A stretch of 64,000 nucleotides of DNA from Sphaerodactylus townsendi (GCF_021028975.2 NC_059426.1:126294001-126358000); one strand, 5' to 3'. Positions 7,411 to 45,105 are shown, counted from the first letter of the stretch. The notes: generated from the letters alone by a model not told the origin. Program-made: numbers and translations.

Positions 7411-8080
7411 CTTGGAGGGCCTGGTTTCTACAACAGCCATAACATTAGTATCTCAAAATATTGTGTGAAAACAACAACAACAACAACAACAGCAAGGAAC
7501 AGTTAAAGAGACCTCTCTGGGGACTCATTTTATTTATTTCTCCCCTTTCAAAATGACCACAAAGAGTAAACGGAGGTGTACTATTTATTCAGATTACCAC
7601 AGTCCTGGGATTCAATCATAAATGTAGTTTATGATTTTAAACTTGGGAACATAATTCCTAGGATTACAACATATCCCCCGCACCTTCCGACCGCGATCCT
7701 AGACACACTTTTGTTAGTAATCATTCAGAGAATCGGGCAGCAAATAAAACAATGCCAGGGCGAAGCTAGAACTGCTCTTCCTGATGCAGGTTTGGGGGCG
7801 GGCAGGGAAACATTAATCATTTGACTCTCCCCACAGCCGATTCTTGCCACCTCCAATCAACTCTGTCCCTTGGGCCAAAGAATCACATTTGGCAAAACTG
7901 CTGCTTCTAGGCCACGTCTTGGGACACACAACGACTTAAGGGAGCAAACCCACGGGCAAAGTGAGATTTGCTTCCGAGTAAGCATGTACGGAACAGGGCT
8001 GCTGTGGACGCAAGGAAGAGTGTGAGAAGCTAAAGCGGCCCTGGAATAGCAAAGAGAATGGCGGCCATTGCAAGACTCAC

Positions 8081-8240
8081 CCTAAGGCCACGTCCCGACT
8101 TTCGGCTACAAGCGGCGAGGACAGCGGCTGCACGAGGAGGCCGCAGAGCAACCAATGAGCCCGGCCGCCCTCAAACCACCGCGTCCTAGCGAGGAAACCC
8201 GCCCTTCAGCACCCCCATGAATTTTGACTGGGGCCGCCAG
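8081..8240 (-). other. KNL1: Probable non-coding first exon of KNL1 (5' end approximate)
   Basis: CpG-rich segment ending at a GTGAGT donor (8075-8080), immediately downstream of the CDE/CHR element. Confidence 0.6.
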
Positions 8241-8244
8241 AGAA

Positions 8245-8276
8245 TTCAAACTAACCGCCAAATCGTGCGCATGCGC
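8245..8276 (-). promoter_or_regulatory. CDE/CHR cell-cycle element plus NRF1-like site in the KNL1 promoter
   Basis: Minus strand reads GGCGG-TTAG-TTTGAA (CDE 8255-8259, 4-nt spacer, CHR 8245-8250). TGCGCATGCGC at 8266-8276. CCAAT at 8152-8156. Confidence 0.8.
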
Positions 8277-8597
8277 CTGGCTCGCGGCATACCGTAAAAA
8301 TAGACCGTAGCTCGCCTTTGCGACATGGCAGCATTCACGTTCCGTACAATATGGTGGCTTCCAAGTAGGTAGGCCAGTTCAGCTCTCCGCCGCAATTGCA
8401 AGGTGTTGAGGTAAAGGAGGCTCGAGAAAGCGATCTGCGAGGTTTTCGAAGGAGTTGTCATTAATGACTGCTTTGGTTCTGCGTATCCTCTGCATTTATT
8501 AGTTGAAAAACAAACTGCATCTATATAAATATACGATTGAAGCACAGATTTGGCAGTAGCAGTTTCTTCTGGCCTTGGAAGGAAATAAAATTCCTGT

Positions 8598-20400: not shown

Positions 20401-22810
20401 TGAAGCTCCGCACAAACCTATTTAAAATGCTGAACTGAGAAAACCACAACTTTGCTCTTCACTTTTCTGGCCACTGACCAGAAGAAAAAAGACCAAAAAA
20501 TGCATATAAATCCTCCACGCAACAAGTGGTCATTTTTACCCTCAGCCAGCCTAAGGTGGTGAGAAAACTGTGAGCTGGGAGCAGAAAGAAAGAGGATGTA
20601 ATAAGACGGTGGTGCAAAGCATGTGCTATGGGCACAAAGGGAAGGAGATATCATGGGGTACTGGCTATGGGAAATCCAGTAGGGGAGAAGTACCAAAGTT
20701 TGCAAGTTGGGGGTAGTGTGAAGAGAGCCATGCAAGACTGCGATGAAGGGAGAGTGTGTTTCATACTGAAGAGAGAAAAATAGGAAGTGTTAGAAAGAGA
20801 GATAAGAAACAAGAAGCAAACACTGATGTGACTCTTTGGAGTTAATACAAATTGTACACATGAGTTGTCGAAGGCTTTCACGGCCGGAATCACTTGGGTG
20901 CTGTGTGGTTTCCGGGCTGTATGGCCGTGTTCTAGCAGCATTCTCTCCTGACGTTTCGCCTGCATCTGTGGCTCATCATGATCCTCTGAAGATGCCAGCC
21001 ACAGATGCAGGCGAAACGTCAGGAGAGAATGCTGCTAGAACACGGCCATACAGCCCGGAAACCACACAGCACCCAAATGTACACATGAGCTCTACATCTG
21101 ACAGCTAACATCCTGATCTACTTCCCTTCATAAGTGAGGGATTATATATGTTTGATCCCTAGAGGGAAACATTTTCTCTGCATGGACAACTAGATATCAG
21201 GATTCTCTTCCCCAATATGCCCCACTGAAATATATGACTGAAGCCTTCTGAAGATACCACTCTTCAAATGGATGAGATCAGTAGTTGCCTACACTCAAGT
21301 ATCTCTGTTGTGGCCATTTTGGGGCCAAGGAAGTTAAGGTGGCCAAAGACGTCAAGGTGGCTCCCACACTTCTAATTTTCACACAGAATTTAAAATGGAA
21401 TTGTTCAAGACAGCATTTTTATAAAAGGTGTAATAAAAGGAATTGGTTAGGAGGGGTGCTTTCAGGATGGAATACGGTTGTGCTTTATAGCATTGCTTAT
21501 TGCATGCATTACCTTGTTTGTACTGCATTGTTTATGACTTGGTAACCTAATTGCTGCAAGTTTACAGTATATCTATGCAGGTTTCTTCATTCCATTATTT
21601 TCCTAATTTCGTAAAGTGCTTTGAGCATCAGTGAGACAAGCAGACCATAAATGCAATACACTGGCCATTCTCCCTCTACCACTCACCATTCCTGGGTGAG
21701 AAAGCAGCAGATAAGGAAATAAGAATTTGAACTGAAATTTCTACTCTACCAAGGTCAACAGAGAAGTATTGCAGCCCTGTTTGTAGCTGCAGTCCCACCC
21801 CATATCCAGCTTGCATCTCCCTGGAAGAAAAGCAAGGGGGATGGAGGGTCAGGAGAAGAACCGAACCAATCCCCTATTCCCGACACGTTAGGTTTCTGCA
21901 CGCAGCGTTTCTGTTCTTCCGTTCTGGAAAGGTGCCGACATATGACACATTCCGAAATAGTACAGTCTGGAAACAGGTATTGTCCACCTCTCATAACACG
22001 AGCGCTAGGAGTTTTTTACTACTGGTTTAAAGAGTCCTGACTACATTTGAACTGCTGTACGTAAAGGTCTTGTTTGTTTTGGTTTTTTTTTTTTTAACAG
22101 ATGCTGTCTTTCGACATTAGCTCCCACGCGTGTCGCACTTTTTGCGAAGCGACGGGCTGGACTACGATGTGCTTTTAAACCGGGTAGGGAACCTGCGGCT
22201 CTCCAGATGTTTAAGACTACAATTCCCATCAGCCTACCAGCATGACCCAATTGGCCCATGCTGACGAAACTGATGAAGTGCTGGTCCTAATCTGGTTAAA
22301 CAAACGCTTTGATTGCTGCTCACTCGCCTTGAGGACGACGCTGAGGTCCCGGACGGGTTGCTCGTTGAGGCGGAGGCGGCCGGCGCTGGCCGCGGCCCGG
22401 TAGTACTGGAGGGGCTGGGCGCGGAACTCGCTGCTGAAGACGTCCAGGAGGCTCCTGCCCAGCCAGCGGCCCTTGCAGTAGCTCTCGAAGTCGAAGTAGT
22501 AGGGCCGCACCTTCCGCAGCCCGCCCTCGAAATAGTAGCTGGTCTCGGCGAAATGCGCCTCGCTGAAGCCCACGCCGGGATTCCGCTTCTTCGGAGGCGG
22601 CACGTAGCGCTTCTCGCCCTCCTCCGGCAGCCCGGCCCTCTTCTCCGGCAACAGCCGCCGCCGCCGCCGCTTCGCGGGCGGGGGGAAGCCGGCCTGCTCG
22701 TTGGCCTCGGAGAGCAGCTTCTCCGCCATGCCTGCGCCGCCCACAGCAACCGGTGAACCGCGCCGGCCTCCCCAGGCAGGCACGAGAGACGGAAGCCGCC
22801 CACGATGCAT
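16686..22810 (-). CDS. RPUSD2: RNA pseudouridine synthase D2; join(22328..22810,19444..19740,16686..17456), 516 aa from the first ATG (alternative ATG at 22729)
   Basis: RluA-family motifs [20 protein letters not shown] (catalytic Asp), [18 protein letters not shown] and [10 protein letters not shown]. Both introns phase 0; first intron is GC-AG. Confidence 0.96.
19444..19740 (-). CDS. RPUSD2: RPUSD2 exon 2
   Basis: [15 protein letters not shown]...VRERQ; cag acceptor, GTGAAG donor. Confidence 0.96.
20865..21077. mobile_element. Penelope-like element remnant: inverted pseudo-LTR palindrome
   Basis: Near-perfect ~85-bp inverted arms; 12-bp TSD TGTACACATGAG; same sequence as the terminal repeat of the Penelope ORF fragment at 45853. 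Confidence 0.85.
20982..21024 (+). ncRNA. Minimal type I hammerhead ribozyme motif (Penelope-associated)
   Basis: UCCU-CUGAAGA-U-GCC(loop)GGC-GAAA-C-GUC^AGGA: stem I UCCU/AGGA, conserved core, palindromic ACGU in place of stem III, GUC cleavage triplet. Confidence 0.75.
22328..22810 (-). CDS. RPUSD2: RPUSD2 exon 1 (in CpG island)
   Basis: [20 protein letters not shown]...CKGRW...DLSVVLK; donor AAG|GCGAGT. Confidence 0.9.
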
Positions 22811-23435
22811 GCTCGGCCAACCTCCGCCCACGTGCCACCCCAAGGCCTGGCGCCTCGGTGACGAAGCAGGTGAGCGACGAAAACGAAGAGGAGGACGAGC
22901 CCCAGGACGGCCAAGTTTCTCCTCCGTAAGCTTAAGGCAGGAGTAAGTTTGCGGATAGCCCTGTGGGTCTGCAGAAGAAGAACAAGATTCGAGTCCGGCA
23001 GCTCAGCTTTTCCAGGGTGGAGGTTTTCCAGAGTCAACGGCCCCCTTTCTCAGATAGCTGGGGAGGTGGCAGAAAGGATGGCAGAGGGGGTTCTGCAGTG
23101 CTCACCTAGCTAATGTGTTCCTGCAAGGGAGAAAACTAGGCCAGCAAAAAGGGGGAGAAGGCGATTTCTTCTAGTTTTCTTTGCATATTCCTAATGGGAA
23201 GTGGACATCCATGAGATAAGATGCTAGTGATGCATTTCATTCTGCCACCTCCATAAGCTATTACCTCTCCACTTTAGGTTGTCATTACATAACATGCTAA
23301 ACTGATGTCAGGATTACAAAGCATATACTCTGTGTACAATATACCACTCTATAGTGATAGTATTAACTATTATTTAGGCAGATCAGCTTGTATGTGCAGT
23401 ATCTTGGGATCAAAACGGAAAGCTAACAACATTGT

Positions 23436-23840: not shown

Positions 23841-23846
23841 TTTATT
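23841..23846 (-). terminator. Probable polyadenylation signal of the PCMT1-like gene
   Basis: AATAAA on the minus strand ~380 nt after the RDEI stop codon. Confidence 0.55.
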
Positions 23847-24224
23847 AACTGATCCACTATGTCACTTTCAGCAGTAGATGTTCAAACAGGAACATTTTCC
23901 AACTAGCATTAAAGGTACATTTAAAATATACCATAATCTACAAAAAAAGAAAAAGACAGCTGAACCAACATTAAAGTTATTTTTAAATTTACTTAAATGA
24001 TTGGTCACAGCTGCAACAGTTCTTGGGAATAAAGATTCTGGGGAGTCTGTCTCCAGACAGTCTCATTACCCAAAATTGTATTTGTGATATTACCAAGGGC
24101 GTAGAGAAAAGGTTCATTAAAAAAACCCAAAGCCTTATATGTGTGTATATGCAGCATATGAATGCCTGATCCAAGCACGGTTGACAGGCTTTCCAAGAGA
24201 TCCTTTACAAGTGATTTAACTCAT

Positions 24225-24237
24225 TTAAATTTCATCC
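24225..24237 (-). CDS. PCMT1-like terminal coding exon (R-D-E-I-stop)
   Basis: tctctctttctctag|G GAT GAA ATT TAA; phase 2 matches exon 7; parallels the RDEL exon of PCMT1 isoform II. Confidence 0.82.
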
Positions 24238-27200
24238 CTAGAGAAAGAGAGACAATGGATTGTTAATATCATACCTGAATGTCAATTTCCAAAATGTGGT
24301 GTTCACACTTGCTGTCAAGAGGAATTTTCCTGAAGCGTTTCGCCTGCATCTGTGGCTGGCATCTTCAGAGATGTATCACAGAGAAAAGTCTGTTATAAGA
24401 GAAGTCTGGATACAGTGTATAACAGACTTCTCTCTGTGATACACCTCTGAAGATACCAGCCACAGATGCAGGTGAAACATTAGGAACAAGATCTACCAGA
24501 CCACAGCCACGTAGCCCAGAAAACCCACAATAACCAACATTGAAAATGATGCTGTTTGGAATCTACCCTGAAATAGCATCACTTTCAATGTTGTTTAAAC
24601 TAGGGAGCCCAGAGTCTCCCTTTAAGGTGGATTTAAAAGGAGAATCTGGGCTCTCTAGTTTAAACAACATTAAAAGTGATGCTGTTTCAGGGTGGATTCC
24701 CCCCTCCAAAAAATAGCATCACTTTCAATGTTTTTTAAACTAGGGAGCCCTGGGTGTGTTCAGATTTGTGTGTTGGGGCATGTTCTATAATGTGTTGGTG
24801 ACTTTGAGATGACCTGGTGCAAAAAATGTTTGGTCGTGGTGGTGGTGGTGGTGGGGGGTCTTGCACATAACCTACTACCACATCCTTTAAACTGGAGATG
24901 GTGGGGGCTCAACTGGGAATCTTCTGCAGGCCACGTAGAGGCTGTAGCACTGAGCCACAGCTTCACTGTCACCCCACAGGGAGGAAAAGGGCTGTTTCAC
25001 ATATTAGCTGTGACTTCTCAAAGCCCTCCAAATACCTACAAAGTACAGCATGAGTTCAGGACAAGGTCTACCCATCAAATCCTCTGTTCCAACTACACCA
25101 AGCTTTTTGTGCAGCATTTTCATGCCGGGGGATCCACCACGTGGGAAAGGATTATGCCCGTATTGCTATACTTATTAAACTTCCCTGAATATATGCTATT
25201 CGGACTCAAGACATTGTTGAGCTGTGTTTCTAAGTTGTTGAGTTTTAGTGATTAGTTTACTACCCTCTTTTGAATACTTCTACAATAGTTCTTTTACATA
25301 GATTCTACAACGGAAATTATTCTATCCATATATTACTCTCAAGTAGTAATGTAGTTCCTTATCCTCTAAATAATGATGTACTATACCCAACACTTGGTCC
25401 TACTGTCTTCCTCTAAACAAGGGCTAAATATAAACAGTAATTTACTACAGCTGAAGCTGCAAGAATAATGATTTCAAGCATTATTTATACCATAGAGCCG
25501 TGATGGCGAACCTATGGCACGGGTGCCCAAGGTGGCACTCAGAGCCATCTCTGTGGGCCCGCATGCCGTCATCTCCCCCTCCCCCAGCCAGAGGTGGCTG
25601 CCAGCAAATGCGTTGGGAGTCACACTGGCCATGCACAAGGCGCTCCTCTTGAGTTGACCTGATTTGCTGTAAGTACCATCTAATGGCCCACAAGTATTCC
25701 CCCTTTCCCACAAAGCTTGGGAGACTGGAGGCTGGCATGCTTTTCTTGGTGTGTAACTTTTGGAGTACTTTGGGGTTAGGATTAAAAAGCCCCGTAAAAC
25801 TTTGGGGGTAGGATTAAAAAGCAGCAGTCCAGGTGAGGAGCTTCCATTGGGAGGAGTGCGTCTGCCAAGAGAAGGGCAGGCACAGTGGTGGGATTTAGGC
25901 CCTTGCCCTGATTGGAGTGAACTGTTTGTTAAGGGCCCCCCTCCCCTGGGAGAGAGAGTGATGGGGCTTTTAGTGCCTGGGAACCCAGGGTGGGGAGGAG
26001 AGATCTTGCAAGGTCCCTAGGCTCGACGCCAATCCCGTTCCCACAGGATCAAAGCAAAAGGACAAAAGACAAAAGGCATTTCACACCGATAAAGAATTGA
26101 CAGGCAGGAAAGGGAGAGGAGCATCCCTTCCCCAACCCCTTTGTTAGAATTAGGGCCATTCTGACAGAGGCAAATGTGGGACAGAGAGGTTCATTTCAAA
26201 ATATTCTCTATGCTTTTATTTTTCTGTTCCTGTTACATTTTGTGGGAAGTCAAGTGCTGTGATGACATGTGAAGAAAAAACTGCAGATCAGATGGTTGCT
26301 CCACCAATTTAGCTTTCCTGAAGTTATCCCACCCCTTGCATAGCATTCATGCTTAGGATTGCCTTCCTTGACTGCCTTTTTACTTCTGTTTTGTGGTGGT
26401 AGGGTTATTGGGTTTCAGAAAGTGAAAGTTTTACTTCCCTCTCCCCCCTTCCCCTTTCCCCGCCAGGCCCCCAGTGTGATAATAGGGTAACTATTTCAGG
26501 GAGATTATTAGCATTATACTTCAGACCTAGTTTTGGGGAAGCAGTGTAGGTAACCCTGTTAAGCGGTGTTAAACTACACTGATTTTCATGGGAAGAACTA
26601 AAGCGTTATCCTTTATCTGGGAGTAAGCTTGGTTGCTGGCAATGGCTTGCTTCTGAGTAAACCCTCCTAGGGTCATGATTCACCCATTCAAAGCATTGCA
26701 CTGTTGCTTCAAAGCAAAGCCACCGACTACCACCAAGCTTACTCCTGAGTAACGCATACCTTGGAGCCAACTGTTTTTTCTAGACGAAAACATCAGTATT
26801 TAGATTAAATTGCCATGTTCGCACTTTGCGCTAAATAAGTGAGTTTTGGGTTGCAATTTGGGCACTTGGTCTCAAAAAGGTTCGCCATCACTGCCATAGG
26901 GTAAATACAGATTTGTTCAGCCTAAAAATAGTCAATGAAATTAAGCTGCCCCAGTGCAGGGTGCATTATAATACATGCAGTTTGATTTCATGCAGGTTTA
27001 TCCCATTCAGTACAGTGGGGCTTACTTGCAGTTGTGCACAGGATCACAGGACAACAGATCCGCATTCATGGCCTATTTCACAGAGTTGTTGCAAGTACAT
27101 CAAAAGTAGGAAGCCAGCTAGGGAAGCTGTAGGCCCGTTAGATGATGAAGGAACAAAGGGTGTGCTAAAAGATGACTGGGAGATTGCAGAGGAGTTGAAT

Positions 27201-30200
27201 GAATTCTTTGCATCTGTCTTCACCCAAGAGGAGGTGATGAAAATTCCTGCATCTGAATCAAGCTTCTCAGGAGGCGAATCCGAGGAACTAGTGAAGATAG
27301 TGGTAGACAAGGAAGAAGTTCTGGCAGCCACTGATAAACTAAATGCTACCAAATCGCCTGGCCCAGATTGCATTCACCCAAGAGTTCTTAAAGAGCTCAA
27401 GCATGAAATTGCTGATCTTCTCACTTTAATATGCAACTTTTCCCTGAAATCAGCCTCCATCCCTGAAGACTGGAAGATGGCCAATGTCACACCAATCTTT
27501 AAGAAAGGACCGGGGGGGGGGGGGGGGCTGGGAAATTACAGGCCAGTCAGTTTGACATCTGTTCCTGGTAAATTAGTAGAATCTATCATTAAAGATAAAA
27601 TTATAAAACATGTAGAAAAGCAAGACCTGTTGAGGAAGAGTCAGCATGGCTTTTGCAGAGGCAAATCCTGTCTTACAAACTTACTAGAGTTCTTTGAGGG
27701 TGTAAACAGGGATGTGGATAAGGGGGAACCAGTGGACATTGTCTACTTGGATTTCCAAAAGGCTTTTGACAAACGTTCCTCACCAAAGACTATTAAGAAA
27801 ACTCAACAATGAAGGAATAAGAGGGGAAGTCTTCCTATGGATTCAAAACTGGCTGAGGAACAGGAAGCAAAGGGTGGGTGTAAATGGGAAGTTCTCACAA
27901 TGGAGAGATGTAGGGATGTGGTGAGAACCACAAAGGATGTAGGGAGTGGTGAGAACCACAAAAGATTGCGAAGAGCTCCAAGTGGACCTTGATAAATTAG
28001 GTGAGTGGGCTAAGAAATGGCAAATGCACTTCAATGTAGCAAAATGTAAAGTGATGCACATAGGGGCAAAGAATCCAAACTTCACATACACGCTACAGGG
28101 GTCAGTGCTATCAGTTACAGACAAGAAAAGGGATTTGGGCGTCTTAGTTGATAATTCCATGGGAATGTCAACTCAGTGAATGGCAGCTGTGAAAAAGGCA
28201 AACTCTATGCTGGGGATAATTAGGAAAGGAATTGATTATAAAACTGCAAAGATTCTCATGCCTTTATATAAAGCAGTGGTGCGACTGCACCACGTTCAGT
28301 TCTGGTTGCCACATCTCAAAAAGGATATCGAAGAAATAGAAAAAGTGCAGAGAAGGGCAACGAGGATGATTGAAGGATTGGAGCACCTTCCTTATGAGGA
28401 GAGGCTGCAGTGTTTGGGTCTCTTTAGTTTGGAGAGGAGACGTCTGGGGGGGATATGATTGAAGTCTATAAAATTATGCATGGGGTAGAAAATGTTGACA
28501 GAGAGAAATTTTTCTCTCTTTCTCACAATACTAGAACCAGGGGGCATTCATTGAAAATGCTGGGGAAGGGGGGGATTAGGACTAATAAAAGGAAACATTG
28601 GAATATGTTGCCCGAGGAGGTGGTGATGGCCACTAGCCTGGATAGCTTTAAAAAGATTTATGGAGGAGAAGTCGATGGCTACCAATCTTGATCCTCCTTG
28701 ATCTGAGATTGCAAATGCCTTAGCAGACCAGGTGCTCAGGAGCAACAGCCGCATGTGAGCTCCCTGCATGTGAGCTCCCAAAGCAGCAGAAGGCCATTGC
28801 TTTCACATCCTGCATGTGAGCTCCCAAAGGCACCTGGTGGGCCGCTCATTAATATTTTACCGAGGCCATTGTTTCTCCTTATCTGTCAGAGGAACATAGA
28901 TTACACCCATAGTTCTTATGTTCTTATGCAGTGGGATAAAATGGGACTAGTCACATACGTGGTCCTGAGCTCATTGGACAAAGCATGAAAGATCAGTGTG
29001 ATTGTTATTTATTATTAGTTTAGACGGTTTGTGTCTGCAGCAAAGATTTAAAAATACTGACATCGTTATATGGAATAAGAAACTGAAGCTACGAGTTTCT
29101 TTTCTGTGGTTCCCAAGGCACTTTCCTATTTCTACTTTTATGAACTCTTATAATAGCTGCACTGCACCCAATTTCTTTGCATTGCCTAGTACAAAGGGTA
29201 GTGGTTAGGGATTTTCTTTTCACTATTAAGATGTAACTATAGGAAAAGTGAACTTTTTTACAGCTGTGCCTTGCAAAAGAGGAGAAGAGCTCATTAATAT
29301 TTTACCGAGGCCATTGTTTCTCCTTATCTGTCAGAGGAACATAGATTACACCCATAAGTTGCTTCTCCACAATATTTCCATCTTCAGTTTTGTCATACTG
29401 CATCATAACCTGGTTTCCACCCTCAGGCCCTACAGGCAAAATTAGTCGTCCTCCAAGTTTCAACTGATTCAGCAGCTGGAAAAAGGGAAACAGAATCAAT
29501 TAGGTGAATGGAACATAACATGGAAACTGAAAAATTCAGTACAGCAAGCACAGAACAAACTATTTGTTGCTGATCTGCTGAAAATGCAAACCTCATCTAT
29601 TTATATCCCAAGCTGGGATGACACTAACAATTACTTATTCCTATGACAATAAGAGATATAATTCAATCTGTTTTTGACATCCTACTTTGGAAGTGGCTAT
29701 TCTGTTTCAGAGGTTAGAACAAATAGTATCAATTAAACATTGTCTCAGCAAAATTATTCTGCACAGAAAACAGATTTGAAAAGGACTCTGTTCATTATGG
29801 TATGTCATAGTCACAAAAGAAGTGACACTTTGTCACCTACCATATATACTCGCATATAAATTGATTTTTCAGCACACTTTTTGTGCTGAAAAAGCCCCCC
29901 TCGACTTATACGCGAGTGAGGTGTATTTTAAAAAATATTTTAAGGTTTTTACTTTGTCGGCCGCCAGGGGGCGCAGCTTTTAGGCTAGCAGCACCAAAAT
30001 TTCAGGGTATCATCAGGTGACACTTCACTAAACCTAGGTGGTATAATCAGTATAGACTCCTGCTGACACCACCCAGGTTTGGTGAAGGTTGGCTCAGGGG
30101 GTCCAAAGATAATCTCTTGCTGATACCAGCCAGGTTTGGTGATGTTTGGTTCAAAGGGTCCAAAGTTATGGACCCTCAAAATGTAGCCCCATCTATTATT

Positions 30201-33200
30201 AGCTCCCATTGGAAACAATGGGGAATGGGCACCCCTTTGGGGGTCCATAACTTTGGACCCCCTGAGCCAACCTTCACCAAACCTGGGTGGTGTCAGCAGG
30301 AGGGTCTCCTAAAGATACTCTGAAATGTTGGTACTACTAACATAAACATTCCTCCCCTGACAGAAGCATTTAACCTACTGATGCCTCAATGTAATTTTAT
30401 TGGTATCTATTTTTATTTTTGAAATTTACCAGTAGCTGCTGCATTTCTCACCCTTGACTTATATGCGAGTCAATAAGTTTTCCCAGTTTTCAAATCACAA
30501 ATAGTGGTCAGATTTCCAAAGCAGTTTTCATTTTCCGAGACAGTTGTTTTACTTAAGATTCATTAAATGCTATATCTTCTGTAAGTATATCTGAATGGTA
30601 CAGTATTATTTAGGGTTATTCAGATTTCTTGCTACAGTCAGTCTGGCTGCAATGAGGAAACCTCCCAGTGGGAAAATTTTCTGGTAAAGCCACCAGTAAC
30701 CAAATAGACTCAGGGGAATCTAGTTAGTTTTATCTCATAATATTTTAATTATGATTTTATCAAAATCTAATATAGTCCAGTTTCAACAGGCCTCTAGCAT
30801 GAATTAAATAAATCTTCTAGAGCAGGGGTCTGCAACCTGCGGCTCTCCAGATGTTCATGGACTACAATTCCCATCAGCCCCTGCCACCATGGCCAATTGG
30901 CCATGGTGGTAGGGGCTGATGGGAATTGCAGTCCATGAACATCTGGAGAGCTGCAGGTTGGAGACCCCTGTTCTAGAGGCACAGACTACTAACATTTAGC
31001 AGAATTTTTGAATATTTTTGCGGTTTGGCAGATAGATCCTAATAAAAGGGGATTGTATAGATTTTTCCCTGACATATCCTTTTTGCAGGATACAAAGAAT
31101 CAAAACTCTAGACACAAAACTATTGTTGTATGGAAATCCCAAAGCTTCTCTGTTCCATCCTCTCCCATGAAGAAAGAATATGTCATTTTCCACAGAAATC
31201 ATCTAAACTTAGTAAAAGATATAGTAATTAACTTATTTAAAAACTCTAGCTAGTGTCTTGAAGGACGCTGTTTTTTCCCCTTTCTTTCTTACCTCGTTTG
31301 GCACTGTGGGTGCAGCTGCTCCAACATGGATGGCATCATAAGGGGCTTCTTCAGGGTACCCCTTTCTGCCATCCCCAACTGTGGAGAGAGAATGTGTAGT
31401 GAAGGTTCTTGTTCAGATGGTAGCTGTTTCTAAACCATTTGCCTCTGCCTCTGCCTTTCCTTTCACTTGAAGCCTATATGTAGGAGAGACCTGTATGCAG
31501 ATTATGTGAGCATTTGGGACGTCCCAACACAATGTGGAAGCCATGCTGAGGGATATGTAGCTTTCCAATATTTTGATCTAGGCCGCATGAAACTGGAAAA
31601 GCAAAGGAAGTGGTACAGAGGGAAAAGATAGATGGATCTTAGATTATAAGTAGCTAGTTATCACATAAATATACTTCTAGATATTTGGCGTCAAAGACAC
31701 AATCCTATGCACGGTTACTTTTTAAAAAACTGTCAGGATTTGCTTTTGATTTTAAGTTGGTTGAAGAGGCTGGGCAAAATAGCCATTTTGTATGAGCATA
31801 ACCAAGGATTAGAAATTCCATATAACTCCCCACTGGTTTCATTAGAACTTGATCCTAATTAAATATAGAATCACTTCTGTGTTAGAAATAAAAAAATAAT
31901 TTTGAATTTGTGAATTGGAACAGAAACACCTGATGTAGTAATATGAGAACTGCAAGTGCCTCTTAGGCTTGCACAACAGAATTAAGCAATTTTTATTCCA
32001 TGTCTCTGCCAACTGGGACCACTAGATTTCCCAGTTCCTGATTTAGCTTCCACATATAACACACCACATCTCAAACACATTTCCACATCCTCCTATATTT
32101 CTAAGTATATGTTAAGGCTATCTGCTTCAGTGGCATTTTCAAAGTAAAAGTGTTATCCAACTGTCCAGCCAGTCTATTTACATCAGAATATCCAGAAAGT
32201 GCATCAGCAAAAAACTGAAACAACTTATTGTGTACCATCTGCCTCTCCACATACTTTCAGGTAGCACAACTAATTATTTAATTTATATTCAACAAAGAGC
32301 AATTACATGCATTTTAAAGTGTGTGCCCTGCCAAATATGGTTCCACAGAATGGCACAGGCCATTAACAAGTTATCAGTTTGAAAATGCAGAGTTACCACA
32401 TCATGCAGAATACATATTGGCAGCAGAGTCAAACACAAAAGAACACGTCTGTCCAACTCCATAACCTATGCCATCTGCTTAGACACCAAGGGGACACAAA
32501 GTATCTCACACACTCACCTAAAGAATTGCTTAAAAAAAAAAGTACCCACCAACCTTCTAAAACGAAAGAGGCCTGAGGCCTCTCTGCAGATGGAGCTCCA
32601 GAGTAAGGGTTTTTCTATACAGAAGTCCTAGTTCTTTGTCATCAGTCTAGCCTGCAACAAAGATAATACCCGGTTCTGGGTTCCCTTAGATAATGGCAGT
32701 GTATGAGGAGGAGACTTACAGTTCTCCAAGATAAATGATCTAGGTCTGGTTTGTCATAAGAGTTGATATTAGTAACAACAAGGCAATCTACTTCTCACAT
32801 CCTAACCAAACGCACCTCAGTGTTATTGCTGGACAGCACGCTGCTGAAGAAGCCTATACCAAATGAATAAGGGTAAATGGCCCCAAATAAAGGAATTTGT
32901 ACCACTACTACAATCCAAAGAGCTCACCTAGAAGTTTCACACGTCCAGAGCTAAGCAAAGTTGCATCATCCTCTCTGACATTTCTGATGGATTCATGAAC
33001 CAAATCTTCAATGTGTTCAATTCCCACTGCCTTCCCTGTGGGACCCACCTGTAAGAGGAACCATTTCAAGCTACATTGTAGCTACAAATTAAAGAACTGA
33101 TAATTTCTCTTACTGTGATTATTTTATAAGCTGGACATTTATATGCAACAATGACTTTATTCAGTACATTTCTGGTTATCCCTAGACATACTCTTCATTA

Positions 33201-36200
33201 ATATAAAATGTGGCAAAGGAAATCTGGCTAAGTTCCTACATGATTGTTCGGTAATGTCCAAGGTACGGAAAAGACATTTTCAGCAGTTGCTAGGACTAGC
33301 ATGTGCACATTATTTAAAACTGCAAAACCTGCTTCAATAGCCTCATTTAATTTATCCAAACATCAGTTCGGTTCAAGGGAATACTCCGCTGGACATTAAT
33401 AGCTGTAAATATTTAGATATCTCACAAGCAGTTCTGAGAAGAGCCTCAGGTTTTTAACAAAAACTGGATGTCTATGTTTTCGCCACAAATTCGCAAGAAA
33501 ACGTTCTGCTTACCATCCTAGCAAAGCACGCCGTGAGGTATCCACTTCCTGATCCCACATCCAGTGCCAAGGCTCCTTCCACTAACTGATCCTTCAGTAA
33601 CTCTAGAGCATGAGCATGCTGTAAAAATAAACAATATTTCATAATTTCCAATACATAGAAATGTACCTTATGGTCCCCGTGCCCAATGCCAATAAAAGAA
33701 TATAGTAAAAACAAATTGGCAATAAAGATATAGAAAGTATATAACGGGATTTCCCAAATCTCTCATTTTGGCAGACAAATAAGAAGGAAGGTCACACATA
33801 GTTCCTGGACAATCTTGCTTGACTTTGCAGATAAATGGCACAAGCACAGGTAGGTTTAAGGATCACCCACTCCACCCATATCACTGACTGGCATTCCCTG
33901 AATGTCTTAAGAAACAGACTGTTATTGCTTTTTGATCCACATGAAAGGTAAAGGAAAGCAGCTGCAGAATGTTGAGAACAAGGCTTGCAATTAAGGGCAC
34001 TGTTTTTGCACTGTATTATGCCTACACCTAGGTTATACTCCCATTCCACCAGATTGTAGCATTTGTGCACACAGGTTGATAAATTTGACACCAACCGACA
34101 CTACAACTAAAATAATCCTTCAGCACAGGTTCTTAGGATATCAATTTCACGGGAGATACAATGCATCCATGAGGCATATGAGAATAATGGTGGGTAAGGC
34201 ATAGAGTGGAAGACTCTTGAGTTCCAGGTTCAATTTCCCACTCCTGCATGAAGCCTGCTGGATGACCTCGGTTCAGTTACAGTTCTCTCAGAACTCCCTC
34301 AGCCCATGTGGAGGCAGGAAATGGCAAACCATCTCTGAATGTGTCTTCCCTTGAAAACCTATGGGGTTGCCATAAGTCAGCTGTGACCTGATGATACACA
34401 CAAACAACAAATAATAATTGAACCATGCTTCTAAAGAATGGGAAAGGCCATACATCAGTAGCAGGACACACAGTTTTCATGCAGAAGTTCTAGATTCAAT
34501 TGTTTGTATTTCTACTGAAACGGAACAGGACTGGAAGATGCCACTGCTGGAGTCCCAAGACAACTGCTGTCAGTCAGAGCAGACAGTGCAAAGTGAGATG
34601 GGCAAATGATCAGATGGAGCACAAAACACTTTCATTTCTTTCAGTACTTTTGTGGTCCCTCCACTAAACACTTAGTGCACATTTGTCCTCAAGCACTGCT
34701 TTAACAGATCTGAAAGTGGGCCTTACCATGTGAGGTGCACTGATTGTAGCCTGGTATCCTGAAAGAAATATTTTCATGTCAAGACTTTATAGTAACTTGA
34801 GCATTTTCTATGGATTTGAATTGTTGCTATCATAATTAACCCCCTCTCCCATTTTCCGAGGCAATTCAAAGATGTCCTGATGTGTCTCCTATAGTGTTAG
34901 CAGAATAATCTATCCACAAAAACTTTCCATGATCCACTTCTGCAGCCAAAGCAGAACTCGCAATTGCTGAAGATTCCAAGGAAGTCATGTTCAAGTCTCT
35001 ATGATCATCAGTAAAGTGTCACATTCTTTATTAACTGGTAATTGTCTATGGCATTTCTTACCAATGGATTGAGGAGAATCCATATATGGAAAATACTTGG
35101 TGTAGTGTGCTCGGTCTGTGGCCAGTAATACATCATAGACTCGCTGAGACTTAATCACACCATTTTCTACAGAACAGGGAACAAGAAATGAATAAAACAA
35201 AGTAGATATATATAAATTCATGTAAGCCTGAACACAAATTGTAATTAGGATAGTCTTACAACAAGCATATATTTGGGTCAATGTCTGGACCTCTCATTAA
35301 AAAAACTGACACAAAGTATTTCTCATGTAAAACTAACACTGACTACTCCAGTTCAAGGAAGATGTTCTTTACAAGCCATAACATATGGTAAAGTACCAAT
35401 AAGAGGGGTTGGGTTTTGCCTCAGAGGTCAGTTTGGGTCAGATTCACAGTAGGAAGACTGGAGGAAGAGTGTCAATTTACCAAGATTTAGCTTGTTTGAC
35501 TAGCTTGTTTGAGCCCAGTGGAAAGACCCATGCAATTGGTCCTATCCACATGCCTTCAAACATCAGAAGCTGCATGCTGAAAGAGCCCACAGAAAGCCAG
35601 CCAGTCCCCCCCAATGGTGAGGTGCATCTCTCAGTTTCCAACCTAAGATAAGTTATAGGATCGTGTGGGATGTGCAGGATACAGACAAGAGCTTCGCCAG
35701 TCCAGCCACCTGGTTTCTTTTTACAGTGGTGCTGCTGTCATACAAGTAGCAGAGACATGTACGTACTCCCATTTCAGATCACTAGTATGAAAAGCACAAG
35801 AATATACAGCATGACTGTATTTCAAAGGAAACTTAGTAGAAGAAATAGCTATCTACTCCAGGTGTAGTGGGGCTCAGCCACTTCATCTTTGTGGACAGGT
35901 TTTTTTCCCCCTGTACTAGACGCTTAGAACAGGTTTCTTGGTCAGCTCATTTCTTGCTCATGAAATTAATAATCACAAATCCAAAGTAACCAGAAAGACA
36001 GGGACTCGTTATTTGTCTTGTGGCCCATGTCCAATTAAAATATTTATTCTTAAAAATTATTTATACCCTACCTTTCTTCCCAGTGGGGACCCAAAGCAGC
36101 TTACATAGTTCTCTCCATTTTATCCTTACAACAACTACTCTGTGAGACAGGCCATGCTAAGTGTGCGTGACTGGCCGCAGGTCATTCAGCAAGCTTCCAT

Positions 36201-36811
36201 GGCACAGAGGATTTGAACCTGGGTCTCTCAGATCCTAGTCTGAGACTCTAACAACTATACCTCACTGGCACTCCATATCTCCACAGACCGCTATACAGTC
36301 ATGTGCATTTGAAAAAAAATTAGAGGCAACACACTGTCCTGGATGGCCCAGGCTAGCTCCATCTGGTCAGAGCTTGGAAGCTAGGAAGGATCGGCCCCGG
36401 CTGGTACTTGAATGTAGGACCTCCAAGGAATACTAATGTTGTGTTGCTGAAACAGGCAATGGCAAACCCCCTCTGTTCATCTCTTGCCTAGCAAATCTGA
36501 CAGGTGGCTGCAACTTGATGGCACTTTCCACCACCACAGAGACAACATTGTTAAGAATAAATTAGCATGTCTTAGACTAATTCATTCAGCATAACTCTGA
36601 TTTTTTTAAATAAAGAAGCATACAATGAACCATATATCCAGTTACTTCAGCCAGTTCTTTGCCAATGCACCCAAAATGCAGGCAGCTTCCTGTACTCACT
36701 GTAAAGGTTGTTGATCAATTCAGCATGTGTCTTCCCAGTCGAGGTCCAGGCCATGGTTCTGCTCAGCAGCAGTCCCATCAGCAAGGTAGCAAAAGGCACT
36801 GTATAGCTCAT
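24225..36811 (-). CDS. Protein-L-isoaspartate(D-aspartate) O-methyltransferase-like (PCMT1 paralogue); join(36700..36811,35062..35166,34727..34758,33514..33618,32928..33048,31293..31378,29306..29475,24225..24237), 247 aa (228 aa from the MAW ATG at 36754)
   Basis: All PIMT motifs are intact: [54 protein letters not shown]. All introns are GT-AG with consistent phases and there are no stops. Confidence 0.93.
24337..24538. mobile_element. Penelope-like inverted pseudo-LTR palindrome, left arm truncated
   Basis: CGTTTCGCCTGCATCTGTGGCTGGCATCTTCAGAG and its reverse complement around a 20-nt spacer. Confidence 0.75.
24535..24752. repeat. Alternating direct/inverted repeat units (AGCATCACTTTCAATGTTGTTTAAACTAGGGAGCCC), likely a transposon-internal repeat
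   Basis: Unit occurs several times in alternating orientation. Confidence 0.55.
25498..26893. mobile_element. Non-autonomous hAT transposon (~1.4 kb), hAT1-like TIRs
   Basis: TIRs C(C/A)GTGATGGCGAACCT; 8-bp TSD CCATAGAG/CCATAGGG; no transposase ORF. Confidence 0.85.
27090..28928 (+). mobile_element. CR1 LINE, 5'-truncated, frameshifted, RT catalytic core deleted
   Basis: [43 protein letters not shown]; the PQGS-YADD region is missing near 27910-27950; (TTCTTATG)n tail. Confidence 0.92.
29306..29475 (-). CDS. PCMT1-like coding exon 7 (read-through stop TAA at 29302-29304 if unspliced)
   Basis: [22 protein letters not shown]...[13 protein letters not shown]; CG|GTAAAA donor. Confidence 0.94.
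29838..30490. mobile_element. Tc1/mariner (pogo/Tigger-like) non-autonomous element fragment with internal repeats
   Basis: TACCATATATACTCGCATATAA terminus; repeated CTCGACTTATACGCGAGT motif; internal inverted GGTTTGGTGAAGGTTGGCTCAGGGGGTCCAAAG units. Confidence 0.6.
30823..30970. mobile_element. hAT (Charlie-type) MITE, complete palindrome
   Basis: Same family as 466-585; perfect TSD TTCTAGAG. Confidence 0.88.
31293..31378 (-). CDS. PCMT1-like coding exon 6
   Basis: [29 protein letters not shown]. Confidence 0.95.
32928..33048 (-). CDS. PCMT1-like coding exon 5
   Basis: [40 protein letters not shown]. Confidence 0.95.
33514..33618 (-). CDS. PCMT1-like coding exon 4 (SAM-binding motif I)
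   Basis: [35 protein letters not shown]. Confidence 0.96.
34727..34758 (-). CDS. PCMT1-like coding exon 3
   Basis: [11 protein letters not shown], 32 nt. Confidence 0.95.
35062..35166 (-). CDS. PCMT1-like coding exon 2
   Basis: [22 protein letters not shown]...[10 protein letters not shown]. Confidence 0.95.
36337..36535 (+). mobile_element. 5S-derived SINE with RTE-like tail
   Basis: TCTGGTCAGAGCTTGGAAGCTAGGAAGGATCGG...GTACTTGAATG, similar to 5S rRNA; shared tail. Confidence 0.55.
36700..36811 (-). CDS. PCMT1-like first coding exon ([37 protein letters not shown])
   Basis: cag acceptor at 36842-36844, GTGAGT donor; the MAW... segment matches the PCMT1 N-terminus. Confidence 0.88.
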
Positions 36812-37397
36812 CACACAAAAATGCACCGGGGGTTCCCAGGCCTGAACAGCCAGTCATGATGAAGCAAAGAGGGAAAAAAATTGTGTAAGGCAAGCTCATG
36901 TAACACGCAACAGAAACCTAATCCTCTGTAAGCAGATGCAACCAAGTTTAAGAATAGATGCACAGACATAAAAAAGAAAACTGGATGATACATTTGCTGT
37001 CAAAGTCAAACACAGACTACTTGATAGCAGCAGGGCAATTTGTGCTACTTTATTTTGGCAAGCGTTCTTTTTGTGTTACAAGTACTGTGCAACACCCTAT
37101 TACAGCTAGACTACCCCAGATCCTGTCTATTATATCTTGATTGGTTATCATGCCATTATTTTAAGAACTGCCAAGAATGCAAGCTGCACAGCAACTTTCA
37201 CAGTATCCTACTTATAAAAGCAAGGAGAAGGAGGGACCAAACATTACTGGCAATTCTTAACTGGACAAAATCTGTCCTCTCTACACCATCTGACATATTA
37301 TTGCTTATGTTTAGTTAATTCCTATCGAACATAACCTATTTAAGAATTGAGAAAGGGGGAAAGTTCCACCTCCAATTCCAACCACCGCTTTATGTTT

Positions 37398-37503
37398 AAA
37401 TATAAATCTTCTCAAGATAGTACCGTACTGATGCTGGCTCATGTGCCCAATTTTCCTCTGGAGCCAGCATCAGTACGGTACTATCTTGAGAAGATTTATA
37501 TTT
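37398..37503. repeat. Perfect 43-bp inverted repeat with 20-nt loop
   Basis: 37398-37440 is the exact reverse complement of 37461-37503. Confidence 0.95.
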
Positions 37504-38057
37504 TATCAAACCTCTGCTGGTTATTGAAGTCACAATTGACCTGATCTCTGCTTTCTGATATTTCAGATGAGAGAATGAAGTCTTTCTTCATGTCCCTTTT
37601 TTTGGTTTTCTTCTGAAGTGGTGTTACGTTGCTGTTCTTGGGAAGACCTCCAGTTTGCTTCCCTACTCTTATTCCACTGGCAAGTAATGATATGATGCTT
37701 TCATCTCCAGGGGGAACACTGAGCAACATACTAAAATGCCAGGATAATATGAGGAAAAAGTTGGCGACTGGGGCCAAAATGGAAAACATTAAATCAAATA
37801 AAGAAAGTACTACAGCAAAAATCACATAATGGCACAAGACCACACAGTATGAAGTGCCAACAGTCCCAGTAGTCTCTGATGAAACAGTACTAGCCTATCA
37901 AAAGCACACAATCTGTATAGAAAGATACAAACTCAAAGGTGGGAAAATTTTTTCTTATTTTCTATAAAGACTAATATGACCATACTTAAATAGATCAAGA
38001 GAACTGTAGCTCTGGAATCCAAACCAAACCCTAAAATTATAATAAGTTAAATTTCAA

Positions 38058-38285
38058 TGTATTGTCGAAGGCTTTCACAGCCGGAATCACTGAGGTGCTG
38101 AGTGGTTTCCCACCTGTATGACCGTGTTCTAGCAGCATTCTCTCCTGATGTTTCGCCTGCATCTGTGGCTGGCATCTTCAGAGATTTACCATCCTCTGAA
38201 GATGCCAGCCACAGACGCAGGCGAAATGTCAGGAGAGAATGCTGCTAAAACACGGCCATACAGCCCGGAAACCACACAGCACCCC
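38058..38285. mobile_element. Penelope-like inverted pseudo-LTR palindrome with hammerhead cores on both strands
   Basis: 13-bp TSD AGTTAAATTTCAA; CTGAAGA...GAAA cores on both strands. Confidence 0.85.
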
Positions 38286-39039
38286 AGTTAAATTTCAACT
38301 GCAAGAGGCATACAATTTGGAGCTAAGCAAACACTGGGCAATTATGATAATTGCAACCAGATGTCCCCTTGGTAAACTTGTATTGCTTGTAAAAGAAACC
38401 TGGGCATTTCAACGCTATGCCAATCATGCAACACCTCCCCAATACTTTGAGGCCCATGAGCCATTTCCCCCTTTCCCTGATCCATTCATGTATTTCATGT
38501 GCTTATACTCTTTCTCCCAGCATATTGAAGTTCTACATTCTTTTGGGGTTGATCTAGTTTGTTCTTTGATTTATTTTGTTTTACTTTGATTCTTTTAACA
38601 ATGCCCTCTACTTCTCCAACAACAACCTCCGCCTTAGGGATTTAACAATCTCTAAGTCACTTAGGGAGACTAATGTCCCTATACTGCTACTCAGTTGTTC
38701 TCAACATTCCATCCTTGCTAGAACATTTTCAGGCTGCATCAGTCCAACCTTTAAGGTTTTCCTTCTGTTAATATAATCAGCCATCTTTTTCTTTGAAGCC
38801 TCACATGCAGTGTCCATGGGCAGCCCTGCTGTGTTACTTGTATTGTCCATAGAGGAACCTCCCATTTTTCTACAAGATGTAGTAATTTTCCCAATACTCC
38901 TCCTGTAGCCTCTATCTTTTAGAAAAGCATTAGATGCAAATAATCATCAAGTTGTCCTGAATGAAGTTTGTCAATTTTACTGCTACATTTTGAATAAAGG
39001 AACTGATATGTTTCCAGAACACTCTCAGAAGTTTTCAAG

Positions 39040-43068: not shown

Positions 43069-44861
43069 CAGCTATGCTATATTGTCAGTCCCACTGTTGT
43101 AATGTCATACCCATGTGCACTACCTGAATCCTGCCTGTACCTCCTATAGCCTCCACCATTTCTGCCTTGGCAAGGGTGTCTTGGTTGTTGGACTGATGTT
43201 ATGGAATGATCTACCTGAGAACATTCCATCAGTCCCAGTTTTGTCCAGAGACCTGTGAAAAGGTTCTGGAATCATAGAATCATAGAGTTGGAAGAGACCA
43301 AGAGCTATCAAGTCCAACACCCTGCCATGCAAGAATAAACAATCATTGTGTATTCAAGAATACAAGTCCTATTTCAGAGCGGTTTTTTAAAGTATTCTGA
43401 ATATTTTGGATTTTAGACTGTTTAATGTTTTATATGTGCCTGCTAGCACCTTATTGCAGTTTTGCATTTGCATTTGTTAGCCATCCAGAGTCTCCAGAAA
43501 AAAGCAAGTGTAAACACTGTGATAAATTAAAATGTTGGGGTTTAAAATGCATTTGGGACTTGGATTTGGCCTTTATTCACAATCATAGAATAGTGATTGA
43601 TCTGCGGTTTGTGTTTTTTTTGCCTGTGTTCATGCTGTAATGTGTACCCCTTTAGTGTTTGCCTGGTTATGCCTAGAGATGACATACTGGAATTGACAGA
43701 AGCAAATATAAATGTGTAATTCATAAAATGAAAAGCTGAGGACCAATTTTCCTTGCCTATACTTCACACAGAAGTGAAATGATGTTTGATGGGTCAGTCT
43801 GACAGTCTTCTCTTCAGAATATTCTGTGTGTCAGTTCCTTTGGGTTTAAAAAATAATACTTTACATTTCCATCAATGGTGTGATTTCCATACTTCAGAGC
43901 TGACCTCTTGTAGCTACAGTTCTACAGACCAGGTAAAGACGTTGTCTTTAGTCTCTGTTTATCTGATCTATAGTGACTTGATACTCACTGTAGACTGTAA
44001 AGCTTTCGTAAACTATAATCTTCTAGAAAAATAGGCATGTACACCCTGCACATGCCATCGTTTGACAAAAAATGTGGTTATCAGAGTAGGAAATTCTGAT
44101 TCGATGGAAGTGAAAGGCACCTATGCAAATTTTTCTGGACCCAGTTTTTATCAGTTTGTTTGCAAAGTGGAGTAAACTTAAAAACTGGTGTGACTGATCT
44201 ATAAACTATTTCAGAAGAATGTCTATCTATAAAGTTCAAGTAGTCTGGCTGTTGTGGGTTTTCCAGGCTGTGTAGCTGTGGTCTGACCACACATCCCAGA
44301 AAACTCACAAGAGCCACTTGATTCTGGCTGTGAAAGCCTTTGACAATACATTCTAGTAGTTTCATAAATAAGTAGATTAAAGAATTTAGTTTCAGTCTCT
44401 AATATACTTCTAGATTGTAAGGGTGTTTTAAAGCTAAAACTCTCCAATGCTGTAGAAGCTAGCCCTGTGTAGACTGATCACATGCATGGTTACTTAGAAG
44501 TAGGCATTCAAAATTCTGGCCAAGCTTATGAGCCATTGTGGTTTTCTAAGTTTTACAGAGGAAGAGAAACTGACTTCAGCGCCTACCCAGTTGTTGTTCA
44601 CCGCCCTGAGCCCTTCGGGGGAAGGGCGGTATATAAATCGAATAATACAATACAATACAATACAATACCTAAATGTGAGACATTTGATCCACTTTTTTTT
44701 ATTCTTAAGAAGTTTTTTCAGGGTCATTTAAGAAGTTAAACTTCTCATTCAAAACCTGAGAACTAAACATTTCCTGACTTCTTTTTGTGGGTTAAAAGAG
44801 GAAGAAAATTTGAACTGTCTGTTCATTAAAGCCACCTTATTTTTTTCAGGATTTCTCCATC

Positions 44862-45105
44862 ATGATAATGATTGAAAGTGTCGACTCAGTGGTCAGTATC
44901 TCCAGCCAGGACCTCTGGGCTGAAATCTGTTCATCTCTTCCACATCCAGAGCAGACTGAAGACTCAAGCAATGCATTTGCAGATTCCTTTACAGATTCTT
45001 ACTTTCACATAGAAAGCCAGAATGATGTAATGGACACCTCTTTTCAAGCCAACTTGAAGCCCTGGGCACCACTAAAAGATTCAGAGGTCTATTTGGCATC
45101 TTTAG
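44862..45105 (+). CDS. CCDC32: CCDC32 coding exon 1
   Basis: Acceptor at 44847-44849, ATG 44862, GTCAGT donor. Confidence 0.94.

Follow-up and report, generated by a model that had tools for sequence, protein, structure and literature searches.

A paralogue of the isoaspartyl repair enzyme PCMT1 with a conserved signal-peptide-like leader and a KDEL-like tail in the gecko Sphaerodactylus townsendi and other vertebrates

In this work, we describe a paralogue of the isoaspartyl repair enzyme PCMT1 that combines a signal-peptide-like leader with a C-terminal tail resembling the KDEL-type retrieval signal of the endoplasmic reticulum (ER). The gene was studied in a 64,000-nt window of Sphaerodactylus townsendi DNA (GCF_021028975.2 NC_059426.1:126294001-126358000), and by its sequence and position is assigned as the S. 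townsendi orthologue of the vertebrate PCMT1-like paralogue pcmtl, distinct from the PCMT1 locus. The comparison of orthologues indicates that the leader and the tail both arose long ago and have been under selection. Our preferred explanation, which we regard as evenly balanced between being right and wrong, is that the gene would specify an enzyme with a cleavable ER signal and weak KDEL-type retrieval, plus a cytosolic form made from a second AUG. The enzyme and the gene are already known and annotated; the targeting architecture is the new part.

The reading of the minus strand from 36811 to 24225 revealed eight coding exons (Table 1), defined by their peptides and splice sites, which sum up to 744 nt and encode 247 amino acids (aa) and a stop codon. 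The product is a PCMT-family enzyme with the C-terminus ...QWPRDEI. The exons were searched singly, and full-length comparisons were made with the database proteins mapping to the window. Exons 2, 4, 5, 6 and 7 each matched the Pfam PCMT profile (PF01135) above the cut-off, jointly covering profile positions 13-210, and exon 7 scored 82 bits against human PIMT (1i1n). The motifs for binding of S-adenosylmethionine (SAM) and those of the PIMT family are all intact, the frame has no stop or frameshift, and the gecko enzyme is a predicted catalytically intact isoaspartyl O-methyltransferase. The terminal microexon (24237-24225) is directly preceded by the acceptor tctctttctctag; if exon 7 is left unspliced, it reads CGG TAA, and the protein ends with ...QWPR*. 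An earlier, sequence-only reading of this DNA had proposed an intact PIMT gene with a 247-aa product, an ATG at 36811 in frame with the conserved Met-Ala-Trp (MAW) start at 36754 and adding 19 residues, and a separate 13-nt coding exon ending the protein in RDEI. The minus-strand reading bore out the upstream ATG, the donor of exon 7 at 29306 together with the microexon bore out the separate ending, and the exon sum and the Pfam matches confirmed the intact gene.

Two annotated S. townsendi proteins matched the window with 97-100% identity in the pieces listed by BLAST (exons 1, 2, 6 and 7, as well as isoform-specific exons), which included no piece for exons 3-5. The S. townsendi DNA contigs showed zero differences from the exon 1 region (36508-37100), which confirms the assembly there. 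In a sister organism, exon 1 had two differences, both synonymous and located 3′ of MAW, which are too few for any test.

The gene lies between CCDC32, recognized by a Pfam match at 44814-45110 (+), and RPUSD2, whose PseudoU_synth_2 exons follow downstream on the same strand as the gene. The order CCDC32 - gene - RPUSD2 is the same in Hemicordylus, and RPUSD2 is located downstream also in Gekko, Heteronotia and Zootoca. Since these neighbours are found in other squamates too, the gene is not the PCMT1 locus. The search of protein representatives with exon 7, followed by one with the best full-length match, gave many proteins named ‘protein-L-isoaspartate(D-aspartate) O-methyltransferase-like’ or ‘l-isoaspartyl protein carboxyl methyltransferase, like’. 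In a maximum-likelihood tree, the gecko gene fell outside the PCMT1 clade (support 96/91), the bony-vertebrate pcmtl sequences formed a clade of their own (80/78), the invertebrates were placed outside (96/97), and the skate sequence had a long branch and a position that was not settled. The genomic position and the tree thus agree with the proposal, already made from the sequence, that the gene is a paralogue of PCMT1. Mammalian pcmtl was absent among the matches listed, no exhaustive search having been made, and pcmtl appears to be absent from mammals. Of 111 pcmtl proteins, 94 have only one Cys in the mature domain, compared with 2-4 in PCMT1; we regard this as weak evidence. N-glycosylation sequons were lacking in 98/111 pcmtl and in 12/12 PCMT1 proteins; since PCMT1 is equally devoid of them, the absence of sequons was dropped as an uninformative test of luminal life.

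The gecko leader has Arg as its sole charged residue, an uncharged core whose 10-residue Kyte-Doolittle mean is 2.44, and T-M-A at -3 to -1 before W. By manual criteria, this corresponds to the n-h-c build of a signal peptide, with a short n-region, a core of 7-15 residues and small residues (T/A) at -3/-1. Furthermore, we surveyed 82 distinct leaders of pcmtl orthologues from skate to birds, and an in-frame ATG about 20 codons 5′ of MAW was present in every pcmtl lineage (examples in Table 1). The leaders are 17-23 residues long with a mode of 21 (21 residues in a fish example, 19 in a squamate one); none of them contains an acidic residue, and each has 1-4 basic ones. The uncharged run spans 12-19 residues (mode 13), and the best 10-residue Kyte-Doolittle mean is 2.29. 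Two residues before the Met of MAW stands Arg (80/82) or Lys (2/82), 81 of the 82 leaders have T, A, V or S directly before this Met, and the -1 position of the proposed cut is Ala, rarely Ser.

The leader exon was aligned for the window, the DNA of five squamates and one turtle, and RNA-derived contigs, eight sequences in all. Among squamates, the pairwise ratio of nonsynonymous to synonymous differences (pN/pS), calculated from few sequences and non-independent pairs, was 0.77 for the 10 codons before the leader ATG and 0.81 for leader codons 2-9, 0.19 for leader codons 10-19, and 0.05 for the portion of exon 1 that encodes the mature protein. The Leu codons of the leader carry several synonymous changes among the aligned reptiles. 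In Hemicordylus and Chelonia, in-frame stops are located just 5′ of the leader ATG, making it the first usable start in these species; therefore, the leader open reading frame (ORF) is not a product of annotators reaching for the furthest ATG. The leader is more than a chance ORF, and its pattern of substitutions resembles that of a translated leader constrained at the protein level in its second half. The suggestion that the leader is signal-peptide-like and kept in orthologues was strengthened by its n-h-c build, its presence in the 82 proteins and the purifying selection in squamates.

The tail is conserved as well. Gekko, Heteronotia, Hemicordylus, Anolis, Zootoca and Chelonia all retain the acceptor, the microexon of 13 nt and the beginning of the 3′ untranslated region (3′UTR), with the tails being RDEI in geckos, RGEL in other lizards and RDEV in the turtle. 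The last tetrapeptides of pcmtl proteins comprise 24 variants, in which position -2 is E (20) or D (4), and position -1 is L (17), I (3), F (2), V (1) or H (1). The human KDEL receptors accept any residue except Pro at -3, strongly prefer E over D at -2, and at -1 bind L and F equally well, then M, then I (Raykhel et al. 2007, PMC2140024); proteins ending in PGEL, KDEF and KAEL are located in the ER, and AKDEI causes partial ER retention in human cells, with ER localisation in >20% of cells (PMC2140024). The set of 24 variants thus appears to fit closely the experimental tolerance of the KDEL receptors, and the conservation of the tail across orthologues, named as a check in the sequence-only reading, was seen for the microexon in six other reptiles. 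RDEI has a favourable Arg at -4 and Asp at -3, and its closest assayed variant, AKDEI, is weak; by this analogy, RDEI may be a weak member of the functional KDEL-receptor space.

At the leader AUG, position -3 is G and position +4 is A, and the context of the MAW AUG, agaaccATGg, is invariant in 8/8 aligned reptile sequences, which suggests that selection acts on the start context of the second AUG. At the level of codons, AGA ACC (36757-36751, minus strand) showed no synonymous change in the eight reptile sequences, and the adjoining Leu codons vary freely. We infer that leaky scanning may give rise to both leader-bearing and cytosolic forms. A good acceptor at 36842/36841 precedes the leader exon, and the out-of-frame ATG 36857 sits 5′ of this acceptor. 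The 30 nt between the acceptor and the leader ATG are 5′UTR or optional coding sequence, since an in-frame stop occurs there in Hemicordylus and Chelonia.

Spliced RNA-derived contigs from other species contain the leader and tail features. In the contig collection, a 249-aa frog protein is represented in 40 index blocks. In the three frog RNA-derived contigs that were read, the 5′UTR is 126-278 nt long, and the leader AUG is the first in one of them and is preceded by short upstream ORFs in the others. A squamate RNA-derived contig of 1272 nt joins the leader to an upstream exon at the site homologous to 36841 and contains the exon 7/microexon joint ...CCACG/GGGTGAACTTTAA. Four S. townsendi runs, all from one study, matched the window; none is recorded as RNA, and they represent DNA, since all of them include intron sequence.

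The annotated S. townsendi isoforms differ at both ends. Isoform X3 (311 aa) has an upstream exon (37789-37628) joined in frame at 36841 and ends in RDEI, and isoform X2 (324 aa, three accessions) uses the leader ATG as its start and bears an 80-residue LINE-antisense tail instead of RDEI (LINE, long interspersed element). Neither of the two S. townsendi isoforms retrieved is the exact 247-aa form that starts at the leader and ends in RDEI; this form is annotated in Gekko and Heteronotia, and 247-aa leader-start forms ending in RGEL are annotated in Hemicordylus, Elgaria and Erythrolamprus. The terminal exon of X2 seems to be an exonisation restricted to the species or its lineage, and its use would cost the protein its retrieval signal.

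Taken together, these data are compatible with the following mechanism. A single mRNA would provide two in-frame starts. Initiation at the upstream AUG would yield a precursor bearing a cleavable ER signal peptide of 19 aa; signal peptidase would cut most likely after T-M-A, so that a soluble enzyme is set free inside the ER. In the lumen, the RDEI at its C-terminus would allow partial retrieval by the KDEL receptors. The enzyme, supplied with luminal SAM, would repair isoaspartyl residues of luminal and secretory proteins, and part of it may be secreted. Ribosomes scanning beyond the first AUG would initiate at the MAW AUG to produce the ordinary cytosolic enzyme. The ER-luminal targeting put forward in the sequence-only reading thus stands in part: the paralogy and the conservation of the leader and the tail speak for it, RDEI is probably a weak signal, and the accompanying premise about PCMT1 failed (see below).

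Several observations weigh against this explanation. We know of no SAM transporter of the animal ER. The n-region of the gecko leader is devoid of a basic residue, and R3 or R6 is found in most other lineages. The second half of the leader, xMGLLL[ST]R[TS], is conserved beyond what is usual for signal peptides, and its near-invariant Arg two residues before Met would also suit a mitochondrial R-2 processing site. The perfect and unchanged context of the MAW AUG implies that the product may be largely cytosolic. At the other end of the protein, three annotated S. townsendi transcripts (X2) exchange RDEI for the LINE-derived tail, and the tails GGEL, GHEL and RDEH found among orthologues are doubtful receptor ligands. 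RDEI itself, with Ile at -1, does not match the PROSITE ER motif, [KRHQSA]-[DENQ]-E-L (quoted in PMC2140024).

The leader could instead be a mitochondrial presequence directing the enzyme into the matrix, where a cut after Arg-X would leave the mature end MAW... and repair would proceed with imported SAM, the tail being kept for another purpose, e.g., enzyme function. This is unlikely in our estimation. It would agree with the lack of acidic residues in all 82 leaders, with Arg/Lys in the classical R-2 position in 82/82, and with the unusually good conservation of the second half of the leader; moreover, SAM supply is a solved problem in mitochondria, and plant PIMT2 reaches organelles via alternative N-termini. 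The leaders, however, are uniformly hydrophobic and non-amphipathic, with uncharged stretches spanning 12-19 residues (13-17 for the uncharged hydrophobic run) and a mean of 2.29 over their best 10 residues, and usually have only 1-3 basic residues, one in the gecko; nor would a presequence explain why a 13-nt exon has kept the C-terminal [ED]-[LFIV] for >400 million years within the KDEL-receptor-permissive space. The hydrophobicity could also be that of an uncleaved N-terminal anchor holding the catalytic domain on the cytosolic face of the ER or another membrane, so that the tail would never meet the KDEL receptors. We consider this quite improbable, even if Met1 to Ser17 of the gecko leader carry no charge and precede Arg and Lys, as in anchors of the cytochrome-P450 type, the stretch of ~22 residues followed by RR in the long forms of PCMT1 is anchor-like, and luminal SAM would not be needed. 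The 13-residue uncharged run in most lineages is too short for a bilayer, the orientation of a signal peptide is favoured by a basic residue (R3 or R6) N-terminal to the run, and an anchor would leave no role for the small residues at -3/-1 before W or for the conserved tail.

In yet another case, the leader would be rarely or never translated in the gecko, either because transcripts start downstream or because the MAW AUG is preferred, and the gene would simply encode a second cytosolic enzyme, whose tail would play no part in targeting, which is the general assumption for isoform II of PCMT1. The invariant optimal context of the MAW AUG, compared with a leader AUG that has merely G at -3 and A at +4, would fit in here, as would the absence of a CpG island or a mapped start site at the leader exon and the zebrafish Pcmtl studied in PMC7859441, apparently a short form, as inferred from its residue numbering. 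Nevertheless, we find this possibility rather improbable: from skates to birds, the leader keeps its start position and open frame and is under purifying selection at the protein level, its AUG is the first or almost the first one in the frog RNA-derived contigs, and the upstream in-frame stops in two species mean that the ORF is not a mere extension by annotation. On balance, a cleavable ER signal with weak KDEL-type retrieval is the reading that we retain.

The relatives of pcmtl bear on the same question. The sequence-only reading had taken PCMT1 to lack an entry signal and its orphan RDEL to be possibly a relic, a premise contradicted by the annotated long PCMT1 isoforms and by the lamprey protein. 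Long PCMT1 isoforms with a conserved hydrophobic extension directly before MAW are annotated in hamster, rat, opossum, wallaby and shrew, and this extension is present also in turtle, birds, lizards, caecilians, fishes and sharks (P0347, P0376, P0345, P0348, P0352, P0257 and P0406 are among these proteins). A search limited to the N-terminal extension of PCMT1, relying on an exact-word index, returned no mammals, which were recovered by the whole-protein search. The extension comprises 40-70 aa with a hydrophobic stretch of ~22 residues (19-residue Kyte-Doolittle mean 1.5-2.1), then RR; in hamster and rat, the sequence before MAW is ...VTVWEVVSLLGKLLGTVAALKVVLYLLRVCFA, and the stretch adjoining it is ...VVSLLGKLLGTVAALKVVLYLLRVCFA/MAW. 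According to the positive-inside rule, such an extension could tether the enzyme on the cytosolic face. The mouse residues numbered 59-283 in the alignment of PMC7859441 are consistent with an N-terminal extension of PCMT1.

A lamprey protein (Lampetra, P0413) has the signal-like leader MGRPVAQLAVRLLFFGSVVVSRFAA before MAW and ends in RDEL. Therefore, the pairing of a leader with an xDEL tail appears to be older than the PCMT1/pcmtl split and not peculiar to pcmtl, and the RDEL of PCMT1 is not obviously an orphan. Because the lamprey gene, pcmtl and long PCMT1 all have a hydrophobic segment before MAW, and most of them end in an xDEL-like tail, we tentatively raise, as a rather doubtful generalization, that dual targeting via two in-frame starts could be an ancestral and general trait of vertebrate isoaspartyl methyltransferase genes. 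A PCMT-like protein of hagfish (Myxine, P0410) likewise has a signal-like leader before MAW and ends in REEM. Among invertebrates, the beetle Nicrophorus (P0053, MELLFWLLTFTVT/MAW) and Mesorhabditis (P0174) have PCMT proteins with a short hydrophobic stretch before MAW and no xDEL tail; these stretches could be annotation accidents or a wider phenomenon.

The coordinates of the gene and its surroundings are collected in Table 1. The block of ~180 nt upstream of the leader-exon acceptor (36842-37024) is 74-88% identical in Gekko, Heteronotia, Hemicordylus, Anolis and Zootoca, above the expectation for an intron, and holds CATCATGACTGGCTG, which is retained even in the turtle; it may be an intron end, a proximal promoter, a regulatory element or 5′UTR. 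No CpG island was found at the leader exon or elsewhere between 36 and 64 kb in the window, the observed/expected ratio being 0.08-0.46 across 36000-38700, which hints at a tissue-restricted promoter of pcmtl or a distant first exon. CpG islands are located at the first exon of RPUSD2 (22100-23200) and at a second site (7800-8500).

The last intron contains a CR1-like LINE at 26835-28690 (+) with a reverse-transcriptase domain at 26835-27809 (+). In addition, a 68-nt direct repeat, composed of the last 51 nt of exon 7 and the donor with 17 nt of intron, recurs 445 nt downstream, beside the 3′ end of the LINE. Its interpretation as a target-site duplication of the LINE was rejected because both copies are on the same side of the element. 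In either of the two DNA runs, parts of introns 3 and 1 (34144-34515 and 36004-36623) matched short contigs by the thousand, with many joints among them; these parts are high-copy repeats, probably resembling short interspersed elements (SINE-like), and certain ORF fragments recur throughout the window.

Table 1. Features of the S. townsendi pcmtl gene and examples of leaders from other lineages (positions are those of the window; a slash marks a splice site)
Feature	Position	Strand	Remarks
Upstream exon of isoform X3, 54 aa, MFSILAPV...KNSN	37628..37789	-	P0155 at 100%; no Pfam match
Conserved block upstream of leader-exon acceptor	36842..37024	-	includes out-of-frame ATG 36857
30 nt between acceptor ttcag/ and leader ATG	36812..36841	-	frame open in gecko (AWEPPVHFCV); pN/pS 0.77
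Leader coding sequence, 19 codons	36755..36811	-	ATG 36811-36809, context gtgATGa
Remainder of coding exon 1, from MAW ATG 36754-36752 to donor a/gtgagt	36700..36754	-	
Coding exon 2	35062..35166	-	PCMT PF01135 match
Coding exon 3, 32 nt	34727..34758	-	peptide and splice sites
Coding exon 4, SAM-binding motif ALDVGSGSG	33514..33618	-	PF01135 match
Coding exon 5	32928..33048	-	PF01135 match
Coding exon 6 (GDGRKGY...)	31293..31378	-	PF01135 match
Coding exon 7, donor cg/gtaaaa at 29306	29306..29475	-	PF01135 match
Perfect 68-nt copy of exon 7 end and donor	28844..28911	-	original 29289-29356
Alternative terminal exon of isoform X2, 80 aa	27047..27286	-	P0162 at 100%; antisense through LINE
Terminal coding microexon G GAT GAA ATT TAA, 13 nt	24225..24237	-	finishes Arg codon, adds D-E-I and stop
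Putative 3′UTR to AATAAA at 23846	23841..24224	-	first ~100 nt kept among squamates
Frog leader			MSSFLRLATITLPFGLLFTRV
Turtle leader			MSRLLQCAIFTVLMGLLFTRT
Bird leader			MSRLLLYVTLALMGLLFSRS
Skate leader			MMMSLRSMLRLSVVFPVGVFLVRT

Isoaspartate formation is a major kind of spontaneous protein damage, and to our knowledge the only known repair enzyme for it is regarded as cytosolic. Calreticulin, collagens, fibronectin and receptor ectodomains are long-lived luminal or secreted proteins that accrue such damage. With its secretion-type leader and KDEL-like tail, both maintained in lineages from skates to birds, the paralogue makes a luminal repair pathway directly testable in zebrafish, Xenopus and chicken; if this pathway exists, a route for SAM into the animal ER is required. 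Should dual targeting turn out to be general, every vertebrate would possess, in addition to the cytosolic repair enzyme, one directed to a membrane or the lumen, SAM would be present inside the animal early secretory pathway, and both the 30-year-old puzzle of RDEL and the recent reports on extracellular PCMT1 would be accounted for. In any case, our data draw attention to the neglected upstream-start isoforms of PCMT1. The literature search gave no paper describing a signal peptide, an ER form or an N-terminal proteoform of PCMT1 or Pcmtl as targeting.

Of the known systems, the closest is mammalian PCMT1 isoform II, which shares with pcmtl the enzyme family, the exon plan and an xDEL tail encoded by a separate small terminal exon, the alternative ending of PCMT1 being at or near ...QWSR(WK). 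Unlike pcmtl, it belongs to another locus and clade, its tail is a near-invariant RDEL vs. the 24 variants of pcmtl, and its upstream extension of 40-70 aa is transmembrane-like, whereas the pcmtl leader is short and signal-peptide-like. A role of the RDEL tail in the ER was proposed for PCMT1 in 1992, as cited in PMC7859441, and papers from 2022-2025 describe PCMT1 as lacking a signal sequence and being unconventionally secreted (PMC12187236). Zebrafish Pcmtl, the fish member of the pcmtl orthologue group, is an active isoaspartyl methyltransferase with a Km of 3.6 uM for a test peptide, broadly expressed with a peak in brain and gonads, and zebrafish Pcmt is active too (PMC7859441). TargetP predicted no signal on the zebrafish sequences, which judging by the residue numbering start at MAW, and the authors noted that N-terminally extended isoforms might exist (PMC7859441). 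The zebrafish protein differs from the case described here in that only the MAW-start form was studied and that the tail is GDEL; other cyprinids have a leader MQT[LV]....

Alternative N-termini are known to distribute repair enzymes between compartments: MSRB3A goes to the ER and MSRB3B to mitochondria. Just as the predicted gecko protein, the ER form of MSRB3 is a protein-repair enzyme whose tail, KAEL, resembles KDEL, and its location in the ER has been observed (PMC2140024, Table I). It has an unrelated fold and chemistry and uses a reductant instead of SAM, and its targeting was shown experimentally, whereas that of pcmtl is predicted from the sequence. In Arabidopsis, PIMT2 is likewise a second PIMT gene, whose alternative 5′ ends alter the N-terminus and hence the compartment. 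Unlike pcmtl, it stems from an independent plant duplication, is targeted to the nucleus and organelles and has no KDEL-like tail, and the mechanism that provides its different N-termini is alternative transcription start combined with splicing.

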